Below, piece by piece: positions 46,083 to 57,500 of a DNA stretch of 64,000 bases. The notes beneath the pieces were generated by a model. That model was not told the origin of the DNA and did no database searches. It was given only the letters and a program-made list of their open reading frames with translations. The DNA is from Ramazzottius varieornatus (Eukaryota > Animalia > Tardigrada). The position numbers and the translations under genes were made by a program. The stretch is from assembly GCA_001949185.1 (NCBI GenBank), contig BDGG01000002.1, positions 2,167,826-2,231,825 on the forward strand, in the 5' to 3' direction. Numbering within the stretch: the stretch's first letter is position 1; every line of letters starts with the position of its first letter.

Positions 46083-46629
46083 ATGACGTGCCCGATTGGA
46101 CAAACCTGTGGCCCGATATCAAACTACTACTGCGATGACGTCATTTTCTCCGCGATAGTTTCCTCACCTACAGTATATAGAGCATCCAGCAGCTGCAGAT
46201 AAATCCTGTATTTTCGCCGAGCCTCCAAGAGATAGAAGGACCGCAGTTTTAACAACAATGTCTTGAAAATTCCTGTGGGTTCTCGTAGGCAGGCCAGATG
46301 CCCGCGAGGTAGCACGTGTGTTGCGGTGACGGACCATCGCCCCTAGAACGAGGTTCCATGCTCCCTTTAGTCCCAGTGTGCTGGTGAGCTGATTACAGAT
46401 AAATTCCACTGCTACACTCTTCCTACAACGGATTCTTTCAAATCCTCTGCCCCAATTATTTTGTTTAGTGGTAGACCGACTTGGAACTTATCCCGATAGT
46501 TCACGAGTCTCCCCGGACAGCTGTCTCATCGGCGAGGGAGTTTTCGTCGGTTTTGATGCCAACTGTCCCACCGGCAGCAAGTGCTGCATCAGCAAACCAA
46601 TGAACAATATCTTCTGTGTTTCGATTTAA
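46083..46629 (+). pseudogene. Degenerate Cys-rich repeat gene fragment (granulin-like CPxGxxC modules)
   Basis: CPIGQTC (46089), CPRGSTC (46299) and CPTGSKCC (46564), each following a putative splice acceptor; frameshift after the second module. Confidence 0.4.
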
Positions 46630-46860
46630 ACTGGAAGATCTAGTTCTTTGTGCTTCCTGGCGTCATTCGAACATGTACTCTTCTTCTTCTCGATCTAGTT
46701 TTGTTGTTCTGGAGAAGTAACCATCAAAGAGGCTGGGCCAATATTCATCGCAGGTTTGTGCTTTGCAGCACGTGTAAGGATTTCGCACTTTAGAATACCA
46801 GTGAATAATACGTTACATTGAAAACTGTCAATATCCATTCGGACATTGGGAACAGTAATG

Positions 46861-47881
46861 CTAGGCTCTCTTAGGATACGTTTTCAGGTCGAGGGTGACA
46901 ACAATCTTCTCCGGAACCAAGTCGAACGGCTTCTCGCCCTTGCTGTTTACGTAGTCGTGAGCGTGATCCGTTACCAGACGGTCGCACCCGAAGAAAAGCG
47001 CAAGATTCTGTAACACAAAAACGGCTTTATCAAGTTGTGGACTGCTGATTACGCCGTGGAAGTGTGCGGACAGTGAGCTGATCATGTCGCCTGTTTGGGT
47101 TGTACTTCACCTGGGTATAAGGGTGTGAATTTTCAGACATACAATACTGAAATCCGTGCTCCACAGCCCGCCTGTGTGTTTCTTCCATAAGGCGGTACAT
47201 GACGTAAAGGTTTTCGGACGGTGTCAGGGCGTTAAACGGGATTCCGTACATATACTTGTCCAGCATGGCACCTGAAGAAACCACATGAGAGTCGATGGGT
47301 GCAAACCAGATATTTCCGAACTTCCGGCTGTTTAAACTTTACATACCTCGTTCGAGTTGACTTTCATCCGGTAACTGATCTTTGGCACGATTGCAGAGAT
47401 TGTCCAGGTACTCGTGAATCTGAGTGATAAAAGAATGCTTCGAATTTTGTTGTTCGGGGGATGTATATTCAGGCAAGCTCGGGAAGTCCACGGCGTCGAA
47501 ATTTGTGGCGACGCCCATCAATCTTCCGCTGGAATCCACCAAACCGAAACTGTACGCGTTCTTTTGAAGCCGAGGCCAGAAAGGCCGGAGAGCGATGTGC
47601 CTCATATGTGTAATTTCAACACCAAGGTTTGGGTAGTAGGGGATGAAACAGCCTTTCTTGACAAAGCACTCAGCAATCAGGGACATTGCTGATTCTGTCG
47701 GAATATTTTTGAGGTCCTTGATCGTCAGTGGAAGCGTCTGGGACAACATATCCAGTTTCTTGTAAAGCGGCGTGTCCGGCGTGCAGTTAAGGTACATTGT
47801 GTTCTGGAAATCCGCTACCGTAAGTTGGGGAAGATCGCTGTCTTTAGTTTCGGTGGTGCTCAGCCCAGGAAGGTCCACCAT
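46861..47881 (-). CDS. Stand-alone Ebony C-terminal-domain-like (AANAT/GNAT-fold) protein, copy A; exons 47881-47347, 47271-47111, 47007-46861
   Basis: Motifs GVATNFDA, ENLYVMYRLMEE, GF...ENSHPYTQNL and DYVNSKGEKPF parallel the recalled Ebony C-domain motifs GVALNFDA, ENV..M..MEEE, GF....TNT.PLTQQL and YV..DG..PF. Confidence 0.72.
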
Positions 47882-49317
47882 TGTATCGGGACGACGCTTC
47901 CAGTTTACAGTAATGGACAAAAATAGCAGCTCGAAAGTACAACCGTTACCTATACTATTGACTCGTGCATTTTCAGTTACATTGTATAAAACAGCTTATC
48001 AGCCAAGACATGCTTGTGGTAACTGTTACAGTAAGTGCACCCGATGTCGAGCGAGCGAGCTTGCGTTTTTCGCAGCGCAAGCACCGACATATCGTAATTA
48101 TGGCTCCAGGTGCGTCGAAGGTTGGCAGGAAGTAAAGCTGTCGGCAAGTCGGACTTATCAGTTGGTCTAAACTGCAACGACTCTTGCCAGCAGTTAAACC
48201 GGTTGCGGTGGTACAGTGTACTCGTATGGGTTCCTTTCAGGCTTGTTTCACAAGTGTCAAATTGCTGAATCGATACTTCCGCACCTGCCACAGCGACATT
48301 TACTAATTTTTATGGTTGAATCCCCGTTGTCTGGGCCGTATCACGTCGTTATGTAGCGAGATGGGATCCTGGAGCATGCATGGCAGTCAAAACGAATCTC
48401 TGAGTAATGAGTTGATAGCGTCGACGGTTCGACCTTAATTTATAGGCAGACTTCGTACAGTTTTTTCCAAGTTTTAGCAGTTCGATTGCATGTACGTTGG
48501 TCGTTTCGTACGAGTGTTATACGACGGCGTAGCGCTGCCTGTGCCAGCATTGGCCCAGCAAGAACAGCGCACAGACAACTCGGCGAACAGTTTAGGCAAG
48601 TTGCATTGAGAGAAGAACCCGGAAGAGCTTGCCAGAGTGCTGTGTGGGTCAGCAGTTTGCGGCAGTACGGGGAGCTCTTCCAGGGCATCAGTCCGAACAT
48701 TACGAGCATGTGTCAGCCGGAGCGATCAAACGATCTGATGCGAGCGCTTCTACGTCACCCTACACAGGCATCAGGCGTGTTGATGCTCTTGCTGAACTTC
48801 ACGTTTAAGACAGCCAGTCAGAACTCAAATCAGAAAAATCCGCCTATACCTTAATCCCTCAGGACATGAAAATTTAGATACTGTCCAAAGCCACTCCCGC
48901 TGCGAGAGTGGCTTTGTACCGTCTTTTTTGATCTCAAACCTGTTTCAACGACTCTAACACCAGCCGACAAGAAATGCTGGTTAATTGATTCAGCAAAAAG
49001 CTCAACATGAACATCGTTATGCCGGTACGAAACGGTAAATTCCAATGACACGCGCCCGTGCAAATGCTCTTGATTGTTTCTCAGTGCTCGCAAATATTAT
49101 CCTCCTTTTGTTTGATGGGTTTTTTTGTGGTTAAAAGTGGCCACGGAAGTTTATACAGTGTGAGTAAAGTTTCCAACACCTTGTGTGCTTCCTAATTTTA
49201 TCCGTACAAGCTTTTACAAAGTAAAGATTCCGCATTTTTGGCCCCAGCACAATAAACATGATTTAATGAACGTTTCCATCACCACTTGGAAAAGACGATA
49301 GTCAATGTCATACTGAC

Positions 49318-50494
49318 TTAAAAATATGTCCTAAGGTCCACGGCCACAGTAATCTTCTCCGGAACCAAGTCAAACGACTTCTCGCCCTTGCTGTTTACGA
49401 AGTCATGTGGATGGTCCATTATCAGACGATCACACCCGAAGAAAAGGGCAAGGATCTTCAAAAACAGAAGTTGCGTTGCAGTGCTTCAGAATCCTCACGA
49501 TGCTTTGGTGTTTGTGGGATAAACGTGTTCAAAGTACTACTTGGTCGATATTATAATACCACAGTACCGTACCTCACCTGAGTATAAGGGTGTGAGTTTT
49601 CGGACACACAATGCTGAAAACCGTGCTCCACAGCTCGCCTGTGTGTTTCCTCCACAAGGCGGTACATCACGTATAGGTTCTCAGATGGTGTCAGGACGTT
49701 GAATGGGATCCCGTACATGTACATGTCCAAAAGAACACCTGGAAAGAACAAACAGAGGAAGAGTTGGATCGTCGTACCAAGCGGCGAGCGTTTTTATTGC
49801 TGTTGACCAAAAGCATCCGCTACTTCGGAAAACGATGTCGCCGCTCGTTTTTTCCGTTCATGACTGGATGGAAATGAACTAGGTATTCCGGACTGTTGTT
49901 TAGTGAATGCATAAACCGGAAGCGTGCACTGGAAGTAATTCCTTTGGATATTTGTTTACTCGGGGAACGTCTGTGCACCTGCGCGGGTCGGGCTGGGTTA
50001 GCGCCTCACGTACCTCGTTCGAGTTTATTCTCATCCGGTAACCGATCTTTCACACGCTGACGCAGGCTTCCAAGGTACTCTTGAATCTGAACGATAAAAG
50101 GATGCTTTTGAGACTCGGCAGCATCACTTCGCACGTCCTGGAAATCCACAGCATCGGCATTGGTAGCGACGCCCAGCAATCTTCCACTGGAATCCACTAA
50201 TCCGAAGCTGTACCTCTGAAGCCGAGGCCAGACCCGCCGGATATGCTTCATGTCCGAAAGATCAAAGTTTGGATAGAATGGCATGAAACAACCCTTCTTG
50301 ATAAAGCATTCGGCAACCATCGCCAACGTCGAATCTGTCGGGAGGTCTCTCAGTTCTCTGATCGTTAATGGAAGCTGCTGCGAGAATATGTCTAGCTTGT
50401 TACGAAGAGGCGTATCCGGCGTACAGTTCAGATAAGTATGCTCCCGGAAATCCGCTACCGTCAGTGGCGGAAGGCCGCTGTCAGGGAGAGCCAT
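49318..50494 (-). CDS. Stand-alone Ebony C-terminal-domain-like protein, copy B (3 exons)
   Basis: Tandem paralogue of copy A with identical intron positions; LDMYMYGIPFNVLTPSENLYVMYRLVEETHRRAVEHGFQHCVSENSHPYTQ. Confidence 0.72.
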
Positions 50495-51228
50495 TGTTGT
50501 TCCGGCGATTGTTTTACTTCCTTCTGTGAGAGGCAGTGAAGATAAGTCTGACAAGCATTAACATCTGCAATATCAATAGTTATGCGCGCATCTATTGATA
50601 CTCCCAGTTAGACACAGCTGCTCAGTCAGACAATGCTCGTGCATGGTAAGCGTCCGTATCGTCGGTGTGTAAGGAACCAGCTTACCTATTCATATGAGTG
50701 TGGCATTTGGCTCCAGGTGCGCTAAATGTTGGCAGGGGAAGTAGAGCTTAACCTTATCCGTTAGCAAGATCGTCTGTTTGTTTGACTGACATATCTGTTG
50801 GGTGGAAGACTATTGTCAGCAGGCAGCAGGCGGCTGTGACATGCGTACTCATTTGAAGCCTGTTCCATAGCTATCAAATCGACGGATCAATACTACCTCA
50901 CTAAATTGCCCCAGCGCGGTTTGTGGTACCCTGCTCTGCTGCCGACGCCGCACCAAGCCTGTCGCCTTCTTTGGAAATTAAATCTACACTGACTTCGCGG
51001 TTTGTGCAGCCGACTATCGTCCTTATCGCTATGCCAGGAAAAAGAGATCGATCACTCTGCTCATTAGCTCCCGGAAGTATAGATTACACTCATTATTGTC
51101 AGTCAGTCAAGTTTTGTCTGGATCGACCACTGATACGTACAATGCCTGTTCTTCACCGACTTCGATTTTACTTGTGCGTACAAAATTTGAGCGTATAAAT
51201 CCGTACACGCAGGATGGGAAGTCATAGG

Positions 51229-51819
51229 TAGTGCTGGCAACGATACGGTATACCGATATCGTATCGAAAATATCGATGTGAAGCTCATATCGAATAACGC
51301 AATAAAATATTCGGTGATATCGTATCGCGCCATATCGATATATTTTCGATATATCATTATTTTGCTGAATGGCAAACGCGGCAATTATATGACATTCACT
51401 AAAGACTACAGTTGATTTCAAAGTCTTGATTCCGGTCACGGTATGCCGAGCAGGCGAGCACGCTCCGCCCATTCGGTTTTGGTACTAATTCTATCCAGGT
51501 TTCCATGTATTTGAAGTCTAGGACTCTTGGTACTGCCACGTCTTTGCTGTATCCGACGCTTTCGATCTTACAAATACCTAATGTGGAAATCGGCTTCTTG
51601 GGTTCTTGGCCTTGAACCAAGTGAAATCTGAAAAAACTATAATTGCAAAAATATCGATATATCGTAGCGATATGATACGATATATCGAGAATACGGTATC
51701 GGAAAAATATCACATCGAAATATCGATACCGAACGAACATCGAAGACCGCGATAAAATACCCGCGGATATTTTATCGAAAAATATCGTATCGAATTTTAT
51801 CGTGTTTTTGCCAGCACTA
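51229..51819. mobile_element. hAT-type MITE with ATATCG/CGATA subterminal repeats
   Basis: TIRs TAGTGCTGGCAA / TTGCCAGCACTA; imperfect 8-bp TSD GTCATAGG / ATCATGGG. Confidence 0.8.
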
Positions 51820-51851
51820 ATCATGGGACACTAAGAATTACAGTTACTCGA

Positions 51852-52427
51852 AAATTTATTCGCCACCCCCCTCTTCTGCTAAAATCGTTGTAGCTCCTCA
51901 TCGAGAAGTCAGATTCCCTTCCTTCCAAGTACCTTCGATACCTAGGTCCTTGGTCTTTACACTGACGATATGCCGGCCAACAGCAATCAATAAATCAAGT
52001 CGGAAAAAAATTTCGAAATTTGACCAAAACTGCTTCTCGTTTGAGACTTGATTATCGATTTCAGAAGTGATCAGTGGCCAATCCAAAACAGCCAAAAGAT
52101 GTGGCAAACATTTTAGTTTCTGGTGATATCCTTGGACCTTTCGAGAAACGTCTGTGTGATTTTCGACAGGGTGTCAGGTAAAGGGCGTTTTTGACCGAAT
52201 TTTACGGATCTTGACACGATACTCGACAGTCACTTGTTGTTTCTGCACCAAATCTATTCTCAAGACAATATGGCGGTTTTACAACTACTTTGCAGTAATG
52301 TTGGATTGGATTTGGCAAGTCTGCTGGCTAGACTACAAGTCCAGGCCAGCTTCAACAAAGTTCGAGACGAAAAACGCCCTTTACCTAGCACCCCGTCGAA
52401 AATCCCAGGGGGGTGGCGAATAAATTT
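51852..52427. mobile_element. MITE with 20-bp inverted termini
   Basis: AAATTTATTCGCCACCCCCC (51852-51871) and GGGGGGTGGCGAATAAATTT (52408-52427). Confidence 0.7.
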
Positions 52428-56309: not shown

Positions 56310-56419
56310 AATTGTGAGGTCACTTCCGGTTCCTGCGGTGTCTTCCAGGATTTTATTCCGCCGATTCAGTCTATCTCAGTGTGTGGAGCAAACTCTCCTC
56401 TATCTTTCTGTCGTATTTG

Positions 56420-57500
56420 TTCGAAGATCAGAGTGGACAGACTGGCGTAAATCCCTTGTCAGTAGCCTGACTACGGGTCTCTTCCATAAGGCGGTACATG
56501 ACGTACACGCACGACGAGGTATTATGGGTCAGTGAAAACTACAGGCCAGGCGGAAAAGACGGCAAACTTACGATTTGTATAGAAGTCAGAAACAAAAATC
56601 GGACAAATGACGTAACGTAGTGAATATCAACCGTAGAAAAATGTTATGGACAGTGACCATCAGCTGTTCAGCTGTCTATTCAAACGCTTTACCGCTGTCG
56701 ACTTTCTCTTGGAGAAGCCCTGCAATAGTGTGAGCTCTTGAAGGTGTGCGTGTGCCGGTAAGATGGAAATCTAACCACTATAACAAATATGACAAGCTTT
56801 AGCTCTTCAGCCCAGAGCCAGCACGTACGTACAGCAGTCCAGCCTTCGATGTTGGTTTTTACTCGTAGCAAGAATCACCTGCCCGTGCCGCCGTAGCGAA
56901 AGGGCCTGGCCCGTTATATCTCGTCGTTCGTGTACAGGTTCTGATAGTGTCACGGTGAGAAGAACCCAATACATGTATGTACAGTACATTTCAAGGACAA
57001 CTCTTACAAGAACTGCGACCGCTCTGTATGCAAACATCAGGCACTGTTTGACCGTATGTATAGACCCCGGAGGACACACTGCGCGATCTACGATCGAGGA
57101 TTCATCTTCTACCCCGTTGGAGTATACCGCCGTTCGGTAGTTGACGTCTGATCCGTTCATGAGGATTCTCAAGGGGTTTGTTGACGTGAGCGATGTAAGG
57201 GTGCTTATTCACAGGTGTTAGCTCGTGTAGACTTTCCACATCCAGAGTATCTATGTAGGTGACGATTCTGGGTAAAATGGCGTGAAAGCTCCTTTGTTAG
57301 TGATGCATGCGACCAAAAAAGATTGCGTCGGTTCAACTGAGAGTTGCTTCATCGGTCTGGCGGTCAATGGGGTTTTCGTGATCTCTGAATAGCGCTCTAG
57401 AATTCTCTATAAGGAAGTGGACCGGGGTACAGTCCAAGTGTGTTTGACCCGTTATGGAAAGTCGGGGAACCCCGACATCACCAACTCCCAGATCCGACAT
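56420..57500 (-). pseudogene. Third, decayed paralogue of the Ebony-CTD-like genes
   Basis: Fragments in shifting frames with stops align to copies A/B: HLDCTP; TPLTARPMKQLSVEPTQSFLVACITNKGAFTPFYP; KHPYIAHVNKPLENPHERIRRQLPNG; VYVMYRLMEETRSQATDKGF. Confidence 0.7.

Follow-up and report, generated by a model that had tools for sequence, protein, structure and literature searches.

Tandem genes of the tardigrade Ramazzottius varieornatus encode free-standing homologs of the amine-selecting C-terminal domain of Ebony

The stretch of DNA analyzed here (hereafter, the window) comprises 64,000 nucleotides of contig BDGG01000002.1 of the tardigrade Ramazzottius varieornatus. It harbors two neighboring genes on the minus strand, RvY_04161 (gene A; protein P0001) and RvY_04162 (gene B; protein P0002), and the evidence set out below supports their identification as tandem duplicates, each coding for a stand-alone form of the C-terminal (CN) domain of Ebony, the amine-selecting domain with an AANAT fold. 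The pair spans positions 46861 (stop codon of gene A) to 50494 (ATG of gene B). Both genes consist of three coding exons, and all four introns (75, 103, 275, and 122 nt) start with GT and end with AG. The models assembled exon by exon are identical, residue for residue, to the deposited RvY_04161 and RvY_04162 proteins, the records of which were found by a search with exon 1 alone; the two proteins share 68% identity. The original prediction, made from the sequence alone, of two intact three-exon paralogs of about 260–280 amino acids (aa) was therefore correct (280 and 259 codons), and the four motifs quoted in it (SFGLVD..., ENLYVMYRL, GF..C.SENSHPYTQ, and VNSKGEK.F) are all present in both proteins.

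Both genes are transcribed and spliced as modeled. RNA-derived contigs from four runs of four studies were aligned to positions 46400–52300, and all four splice joints of genes A and B were recovered in each of the four runs, reading CT..AC on the plus strand, which corresponds to GT..AG on the strand of the genes. The ratio of nonsynonymous (dN) to synonymous (dS) substitution rates between genes A and B was calculated for each exon separately, with the codon divided between exons left out. The overall values (dS 0.94, dN 0.18, dN/dS 0.19) imply that both genes have remained under purifying selection since an old duplication. Selection was strongest on exon 2 (dN/dS 0.07), which encodes the P-x-EN and N-x-x-P-x-TQ motifs.

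Ebony is the textbook example of an animal nonribosomal peptide synthetase (NRPS). Its adenylation (A) domain activates beta-alanine, its thiolation (T) domain carries the phosphopantetheine thioester, and its C-terminal AANAT-fold domain joins beta-alanine to dopamine or histamine (PMC10510592). Pfam searches with the six exon translations and with both whole proteins detected no family at E 10 or better, and hence no PF00583 (Acetyltransf), PF00501, or PF00550; the C-terminal part of insect Ebony is itself covered by no Pfam model. Searches of the PDB with exon 1 alone or exon 2 alone returned chance matches only, which indicates that the match to Ebony requires the whole domain. When all PDB chains were searched by phmmer with complete RvY_04161, there was one significant match, the Ebony C-terminal condensation domain (6DYM; E 1.2e-8, residues 87–266). 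A profile of the short family members, built without insect Ebony, matched 6DYM over nearly the whole chain at E 5.3e-29; with the same profile, all other chains were at E 0.0026 or worse, and the best AANAT-type chains were at E 0.023 and 0.21.

The relationship is also visible in individual residues. Positions F73, W102, S111, D129, P171, A214, N226, T231, and Q232 are common to every insect Ebony and tardigrade protein aligned, K76, N199, F219, and F260 are each common to all but one tardigrade protein, and both RvY_04161 and RvY_04162 retain every residue of the two sets. Of 53 CN columns that are nearly invariant in insects, 23 are kept in RvY_04161 and 22 in RvY_04162. Across the tardigrade relatives described below, the corresponding numbers are 22–27 for proteins that have only the CN domain (CN-only) and 17–26 for those in which a T domain precedes it (T-CN). 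Around the N-x-x-P-x-TQ motif and in the C-terminal region, all tardigrade members differ from insect Ebony at certain insect-invariant sites: TTNT is replaced by S/A-E/Q/W-N-x and Y..DYQVN by C..DH.H. Taken together, RvY_04161 and RvY_04162 are almost certainly homologs of the Ebony CN domain.

Structure prediction led to the same assignment. The AlphaFold2 model of RvY_04161 (pLDDT 88, pTM 0.87) was built without templates from an alignment that held two insect Ebony sequences; the match of the short-member profile to 6DYM is independent of these. Foldseek ranked 6DYM first (E 1.4e-12, TM 0.87), a structure search of the ESM Atlas ranked the Ebony cluster first, and VIA-align superposed residues 49–276 of the model on Ebony residues 665–877 with a Z of 25.8 and a root-mean-square deviation of 1.9 Å over 211 of 213 residues. 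All other structures reached a Z of 21.0 or less: PBCV-1 A654L 21.0, insect AANATs about 19, and many AANAT-type structures 17–21, values that confirm the GNAT fold of the model. Thus, the statement on which the original prediction rested, namely that the motifs are those of the Ebony C-terminal domain, was borne out by sequence and by structure alike, with Ebony closest when compared with insect AANATs and A654L (Z 25.8 versus 19–21). The opposite outcome, best matches to unrelated GNATs without any Ebony-specific similarity, did not occur, since 6DYM came first and AANAT-type chains were at E 0.02 or worse.

GNATs that use coenzyme A (CoA) carry a Q/R-x-x-G-x-G/A pyrophosphate-binding motif in the loop between beta4 and alpha3. 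In the model, the loop between strand 181–188 (beta4) and helix 196–216 (alpha3) is GIPFNALTPSEN, and a direct reading shows that it lacks this motif.

Neither hidden Markov models (HMMs) nor tblastn detected AMP-binding or PP-binding (PF00501, PF00550) similarity within the window, and the alignment columns of the GGxS serine, to which phosphopantetheine is attached, are gaps in RvY_04161 and RvY_04162. With two insect Ebony proteins as queries, tblastn matched nothing in the window, and only the T-CN gene was matched when about 8–9 kb upstream of each paralog and carrier locus retrieved were examined. The RNA contigs contain no joint from either gene to an upstream exon, within the limit that contigs cannot prove a 5' end. 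Further exons hidden upstream are very unlikely, because independent studies agree and because the 3' end of gene B is what adjoins gene A on its upstream side. The claim that no A- or T-domain sequence lies ahead of either gene is therefore upheld by the Pfam, HMM, and tblastn searches of the window and by transcripts with three exons only, and splicing of the CN exons to upstream A-T exons, which would have spoken against free-standing domains, is absent from the RNA contigs of all four studies.

The search was extended to the whole genome with a profile of 15 insect Ebony proteins. The T-CN gene scored 50 and 37 bits and gene A 19 bits; the only other matches were five short ones, none above 24 bits, that correspond to the generic AMP-binding core motif. 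A genuine A domain of the Ebony type would be expected to score well above this level; the AMP-binding matches that were scored (12 of 51 candidates) all lie outside the window. The genome search for a full-length Ebony or an A-T-only gene, which the original prediction called for, had two outcomes: none of Ebony type was found, and a carrier without an A domain was, in the T-CN protein RvY_06663. The other phosphopantetheine-binding (PF00550) loci in the genome are two FAS-type genes, one ALDH1L-type gene, and two small acyl carrier proteins, which leaves RvY_06663 as the only NRPS-type carrier. In keeping with the lack of an Ebony-type A domain, a survey of animal NRPS genes (PMC10531068) reported no such gene for two tardigrade species, the reason being that A and C domains were what it looked for.

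The N-termini of the window proteins may still bear a trace of a carrier domain. Alignments place residues 17–50 of the gene A and gene B proteins under the last carrier-domain helices and the linker. When HMMs trained on the T domain and linker of T-bearing relatives were applied, the N-termini of genes A and B scored no higher than shuffled sequences; only the tardigrade CN-only protein RvY_04914, the closest paralog of genes A and B (8.7 bits, 0 of 500 shuffles as high), and, marginally, Hypsibius BV898_09213 (5.7 bits, 2 of 500) scored above them. Gene A aligns to RvY_04914 from residue 17. Transitively through RvY_04914, these comparisons weakly support the possibility that the first ~35 aa encoded by genes A and B are a vestige of the tail of a carrier domain.

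When 1.84 billion representative proteins were searched exhaustively with phmmer, only 19 matches at E 0.001 or better were obtained. The named tardigrade proteins comprise CN-only forms (RvY_04162, RvY_04914, and Hypsibius BV898_09213), T-CN forms with a PF00550 match (RvY_06663, 299 aa, and its Paramacrobiotus ortholog LOC129580707, 327 aa, both with the GGxS serine intact), and two further proteins with a carrier domain or a relic of one. Of the latter, Hypsibius BV898_01714 (306 aa) keeps GGNS but is not matched by PF00550 at E 0.01 or better; in Paramacrobiotus XP_055337625 (342 aa), named "ebony-like" by the RefSeq pipeline, the carrier motif reads DADS. The Hypsibius and Paramacrobiotus homologs were annotated independently at 261–342 aa. 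Insect Ebony proteins appeared as full-length A-T-CN enzymes of 866–871 aa, and a record of 365 aa from the stick insect Timema, in which the carrier domain is present, is probably a partial Ebony gene model. The remaining family members are short predicted proteins from ENA, Logan, and JGI (P0003, P0006, P0009–P0011, P0013–P0015, and P0020). Among these, P0009, P0010, and P0013 contain GGxS, P0014, P0015, and P0020 start downstream of the site, and in P0003, which is closer to gene A than any other protein from outside the named genomes, GGxS has decayed to HGNS; judged by their sequences, P0003, P0009, P0010, P0013–P0015, and P0020 look like first exons of further family members. A bacterial protein, P0017 (1433 aa, "pilin isopeptide-linkage protein"), matches only short repeated stretches and was taken as a chance match. 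A profile search with an alignment that included insect Ebony was dominated by full-length insect Ebony through the A-domain columns, and one with the short-protein alignment returned three proteins. As found here, the family is confined to the named tardigrade proteins and the short ENA, Logan, and JGI proteins, in CN-only and T-CN forms.

A maximum-likelihood tree of the CN region separated all tardigrade proteins from insect Ebony across a long branch (100/100), grouped RvY_04914 with genes A and B (100/99), and grouped the two T-CN orthologs with each other (99/98). By this topology, the duplication that gave rise to genes A and B is the youngest event seen in the Ramazzottius-side expansion. 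In RvY_06663, PF00550 is matched at residues 16–73 and is followed by the Ebony-like CN domain. The 8.4 kb upstream of this gene contain no A-like open reading frame (ORF) and no tblastn match. Its N-terminus, M-E-E-E-D-I-Y-S-S-P-W, is common to other T-bearing tardigrade proteins and aligns with D-Y-S-G-V-P, which starts the T region of insect Ebony.

In addition to genes A and B, the genome holds a minimum of two CN-only genes, and two copies have decayed, one of them within the window (Table 1). In the window copy, the exon-1-like pieces fall in three different frames and lack about 39 aa, among them the W and SFGLVD motifs; an in-frame stop interrupts the exon-2-like piece, and no exon-3-like piece was found nearby. 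The proposed local expansion thus took the form of an array of three copies in the window, one of them dead. The second decayed copy, on contig 1, is probably a pseudogene that arose through insertion, to judge from its first exon, which runs into a retroelement-like ORF of 364 aa, and from the stops in its later pieces.

The 364-aa ORF of the contig 1 copy resembles an ORF in the sequence around the contig 7 paralog (L016:1235-1954), and a retrotransposon reverse-transcriptase ORF and an exon of a rhodopsin-like G-protein-coupled receptor are located upstream of that paralog. Between gene B and the decayed copy in the window, RNA contigs accumulate over positions 51128–51324 and 51719–51915; in one run their summed depth is high, and they show loose ends and odd joints, a pattern suggestive of a dispersed repeat or a fragment of a transposon.

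Table 1. Coordinates of the genes, exons, transcripts, and related copies (window positions unless a contig is named)
Feature	Position	Strand	Basis and remarks
Gene A (RvY_04161), coding sequence	47881..47347, 47271..47111, 47007..46864; stop 46863-46861	-	280 codons
Gene A, coding exon 1	47347..47881	-	ATG 47881-47879, phase 1 at end; ORF, donor GT, RNA joint in 4 runs, translation equal to P0001
Gene A, coding exon 2	47111..47271	-	beta4, P-x-EN motif, alpha3, N-x-x-P-x-TQ motif; DNA reading, RNA joints, alignment
Gene A, coding exon 3	46861..47007	-	Includes stop 46863-46861; DNA reading, RNA joint, translation
Gene A, spliced RNA contigs	46692..48071	-	contigs stop at 48040-48071 in 3 runs; ~1.16-1.20 kb spliced
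Gene B (RvY_04162), coding sequence	50494..50014, 49738..49578, 49455..49321; stop 49320-49318	-	259 codons
Gene B, coding exon 1	50014..50494	-	ATG 50494-50492; DNA reading, RNA joint, translation
Gene B, coding exon 2	49578..49738	-	DNA reading, RNA joints
Gene B, coding exon 3	49318..49455	-	Includes stop 49320-49318; DNA reading, RNA joint, translation
Gene B, spliced RNA contigs	49062..50639	-	contigs stop at 50597-50639 in 3 runs
Third family copy, decayed	56401..57500	-	~6 kb upstream of gene B; tblastn and ORF reading
RvY_06663 (T-CN)	contig 3:666934-668048 (L023:435-1549)	-	
Divergent CN-only paralog, apparently intact	contig 7:477769-479032 (L016:7270-8533)	+	24-43% identity to gene A, exon by exon
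Interrupted family copy	contig 1:5691827-5693660 (L017:7328-9161)	+	

These observations suggest a possible origin and function for the window proteins. The family would derive from an Ebony-like A-T-CN enzyme by loss of the A domain, and the lineage of the window genes would have undergone a further loss of the carrier attachment site, the order of these events being presumed. In the proposed reaction, a primary amine, probably a biogenic one, would attack a pantetheine-linked thioester (aminolysis) to yield an N-acyl amine. Given that no carrier is present in cis, a soluble thioester was chosen as the donor; it would be an acyl-CoA, possibly beta-alanyl-CoA, and the proteins would work like a free GNAT or AANAT. 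The residues shared with insect Ebony, the CN columns kept to the same extent as in the T-CN proteins, and the constraint on exon 2 together argue that the window proteins are still enzymes of the Ebony CN kind. On these sequence features, RvY_04161 and RvY_04162 are predicted, with reasonable confidence, to be catalytically active amine N-acyltransferases; the soluble CoA-type donor is a tentative prediction that we regard as somewhat doubtful. Taken as a whole, the reading of a free-standing Ebony CN domain that has lost its A domain and is predicted to be an active N-acyltransferase with a soluble CoA-type donor falls just short of an even call.

Several points weigh against this reading. 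As in Ebony, the GIPFNALTPSEN loop lacks the CoA pyrophosphate motif, which may disfavor a CoA donor. The same genomes retain T-CN paralogs whose GGxS serine is intact, suggesting continued use of carrier-bound donors. Because several insect-invariant residues differ in every tardigrade member, both the acyl donor and the amine may differ from those of Ebony. No Ebony-type A domain was found in the genome by an exon-wise search with a filtered first look, a procedure that does not prove absence.

Two of these points, the missing CoA motif and the persistence of T-CN paralogs, favor the main alternative, in which the CN-only proteins act in trans: a carrier, either the T domain of RvY_06663 or another, would be loaded by some ligase, the free CN proteins would transfer its acyl group to different amines, and one carrier would serve several amine-selecting domains, as in a split NRPS. 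The Ebony CN domain naturally takes its acyl group from carrier-bound phosphopantetheine (PMC10510592), the sole NRPS-type T domain of the genome is retained in RvY_06663 and, like that of its Paramacrobiotus ortholog, keeps the attachment serine, and the window proteins lack the CoA motif, all of which would fit a carrier-bound donor. However, neither the genome searches nor the published survey (PMC10531068) found an Ebony-type A domain that could load such a carrier, the T-CN protein already carries a CN domain in cis, and RvY_06663 lies on another contig, with no evidence of linkage to, or co-occurrence with, the window genes. A complex prediction of RvY_04161 (residues 45–280) with the T domain of RvY_06663 (residues 1–95) gave a score of 0.02, which counts neither for nor against binding. 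On balance, action in trans appears unlikely.

A second alternative is that the proteins are pseudoenzymes, that is, amine- or pantetheine-binding proteins or regulators whose fold was kept after the NRPS context was lost. The loss of the donor in cis, the change of more than half of the insect-invariant CN positions (23 of 53 kept), and the tolerance of the family for loss, as shown by the decay of two further genomic copies, are in line with this possibility. Nevertheless, purifying selection is strongest on precisely the exon that carries the P-x-EN and N-x-x-P-x-TQ motifs, the residues common to insects and tardigrades are kept, and the T-CN proteins, which have retained their donor carrier, are no better conserved in the CN domain than the CN-only proteins. 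A non-catalytic role is therefore considered improbable. The last alternative, an annotation artefact in which the exons belong to a larger A-T-CN gene with 5' exons further upstream, is largely refuted and very improbable: although contigs alone do not prove where a transcript starts, the spliced contigs of independent studies end shortly upstream of each ATG with no further joint (Table 1), gene B occupies the space upstream of gene A, the window is devoid of AMP-binding and PP-binding similarity, and the homologs in Hypsibius and Paramacrobiotus were independently annotated at 261–342 aa.

To our knowledge, the Ebony C-terminal domain has been known only within the A-T-CN enzyme. A literature search, including one by locus tag, found no paper on these genes or on tardigrade relatives of Ebony, and the only prior trace of such relatives is the automatic "ebony-like" name of one Paramacrobiotus record. 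The Ebony lineage is present in tardigrades in a reduced form, with one T-CN gene and an expanded, expressed, and conserved CN-only set, an A-less and partly T-less version of an animal NRPS lineage. A more far-reaching scenario, which we consider possible but doubtful, is that the Ebony NRPS was dismantled in tardigrades: the A domain would be gone from the genome, T-CN and CN-only proteins would have been kept under selection, and the CN-only proteins would make N-acyl (possibly beta-alanyl) amines without NRPS machinery, whether CoA thioesters served directly as donors or an unrelated ligase loaded a carrier. In that scenario, an NRPS condensation-type domain would have become an enzyme in its own right in nature, and an animal phylum would have a new way to acylate biogenic amines.

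If the window proteins are active free-standing N-acyltransferases, an Ebony-type condensation domain would function without its synthetase, which bears on how NRPS domains gain and lose autonomy and would be relevant for the engineering of small amide-forming enzymes. They would also point to unstudied acylated amines in the neurochemistry or the cuticle chemistry of tardigrades. RvY_04161 and RvY_04162 are small, soluble-looking, and confidently modeled, and this prediction is therefore directly testable at the bench.

Among known systems, the CN domain of Drosophila Ebony (6DYM) is the most similar to the window proteins, with which it shares sequence homology, an AANAT-like fold that superposes at 1.9 Å over 211 of 213 residues, and the motifs SF..D, (N)FDA, LP, P-x-EN, N-x-x-P-x-TQ, and PF..P; neither of them has the glycine-rich CoA pyrophosphate loop. 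However, the Drosophila domain makes up the last third of an A-T-CN synthetase, whose own carrier supplies it with beta-alanine, whereas the window proteins are separate polypeptides of 260–280 aa without an A domain or an attachment serine and are about 25% identical to it. Lacking both the A and the T domain, they are not Ebony synthetases. The tardigrade T-CN proteins RvY_06663 and LOC129580707 fall on the same side of the tree (100/100 against insect Ebony), contain the same CN domain, and also have no A domain, but they possess a PF00550 carrier with GGxS and a conserved D-Y-x-S-P-W motif at their start, a part that has no counterpart in the window genes.

Insect AANATs (Dat/iAANAT; 3TE4, 5GI5) and the PBCV-1 polyamine acetyltransferase A654L (3QB8) have the same GNAT/AANAT fold (Z 19–21). 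These free-standing enzymes of about 200–270 aa N-acylate biogenic amines or polyamines from acetyl-CoA, which is the way of working proposed for the window proteins. Nevertheless, the window proteins show no significant sequence similarity to them (profile E 0.02 or worse), no Pfam Acetyltransf match, and no Q/R-x-x-G-x-G/A motif, and the structural match is clearly weaker than that to the Ebony CN domain. SbzI with its carrier SbzG (8ZT4) is a GNAT fold that acts with a separate carrier and thus provides a precedent for action in trans, but it comes from bacteria, has no sequence relationship to the window proteins, and matches them far less well in structure (Z 13.9). By sequence, fold, and motifs, the window proteins belong to the Ebony-type CN family and are not classical Pfam GNATs; by analogy, they may work like free AANATs.

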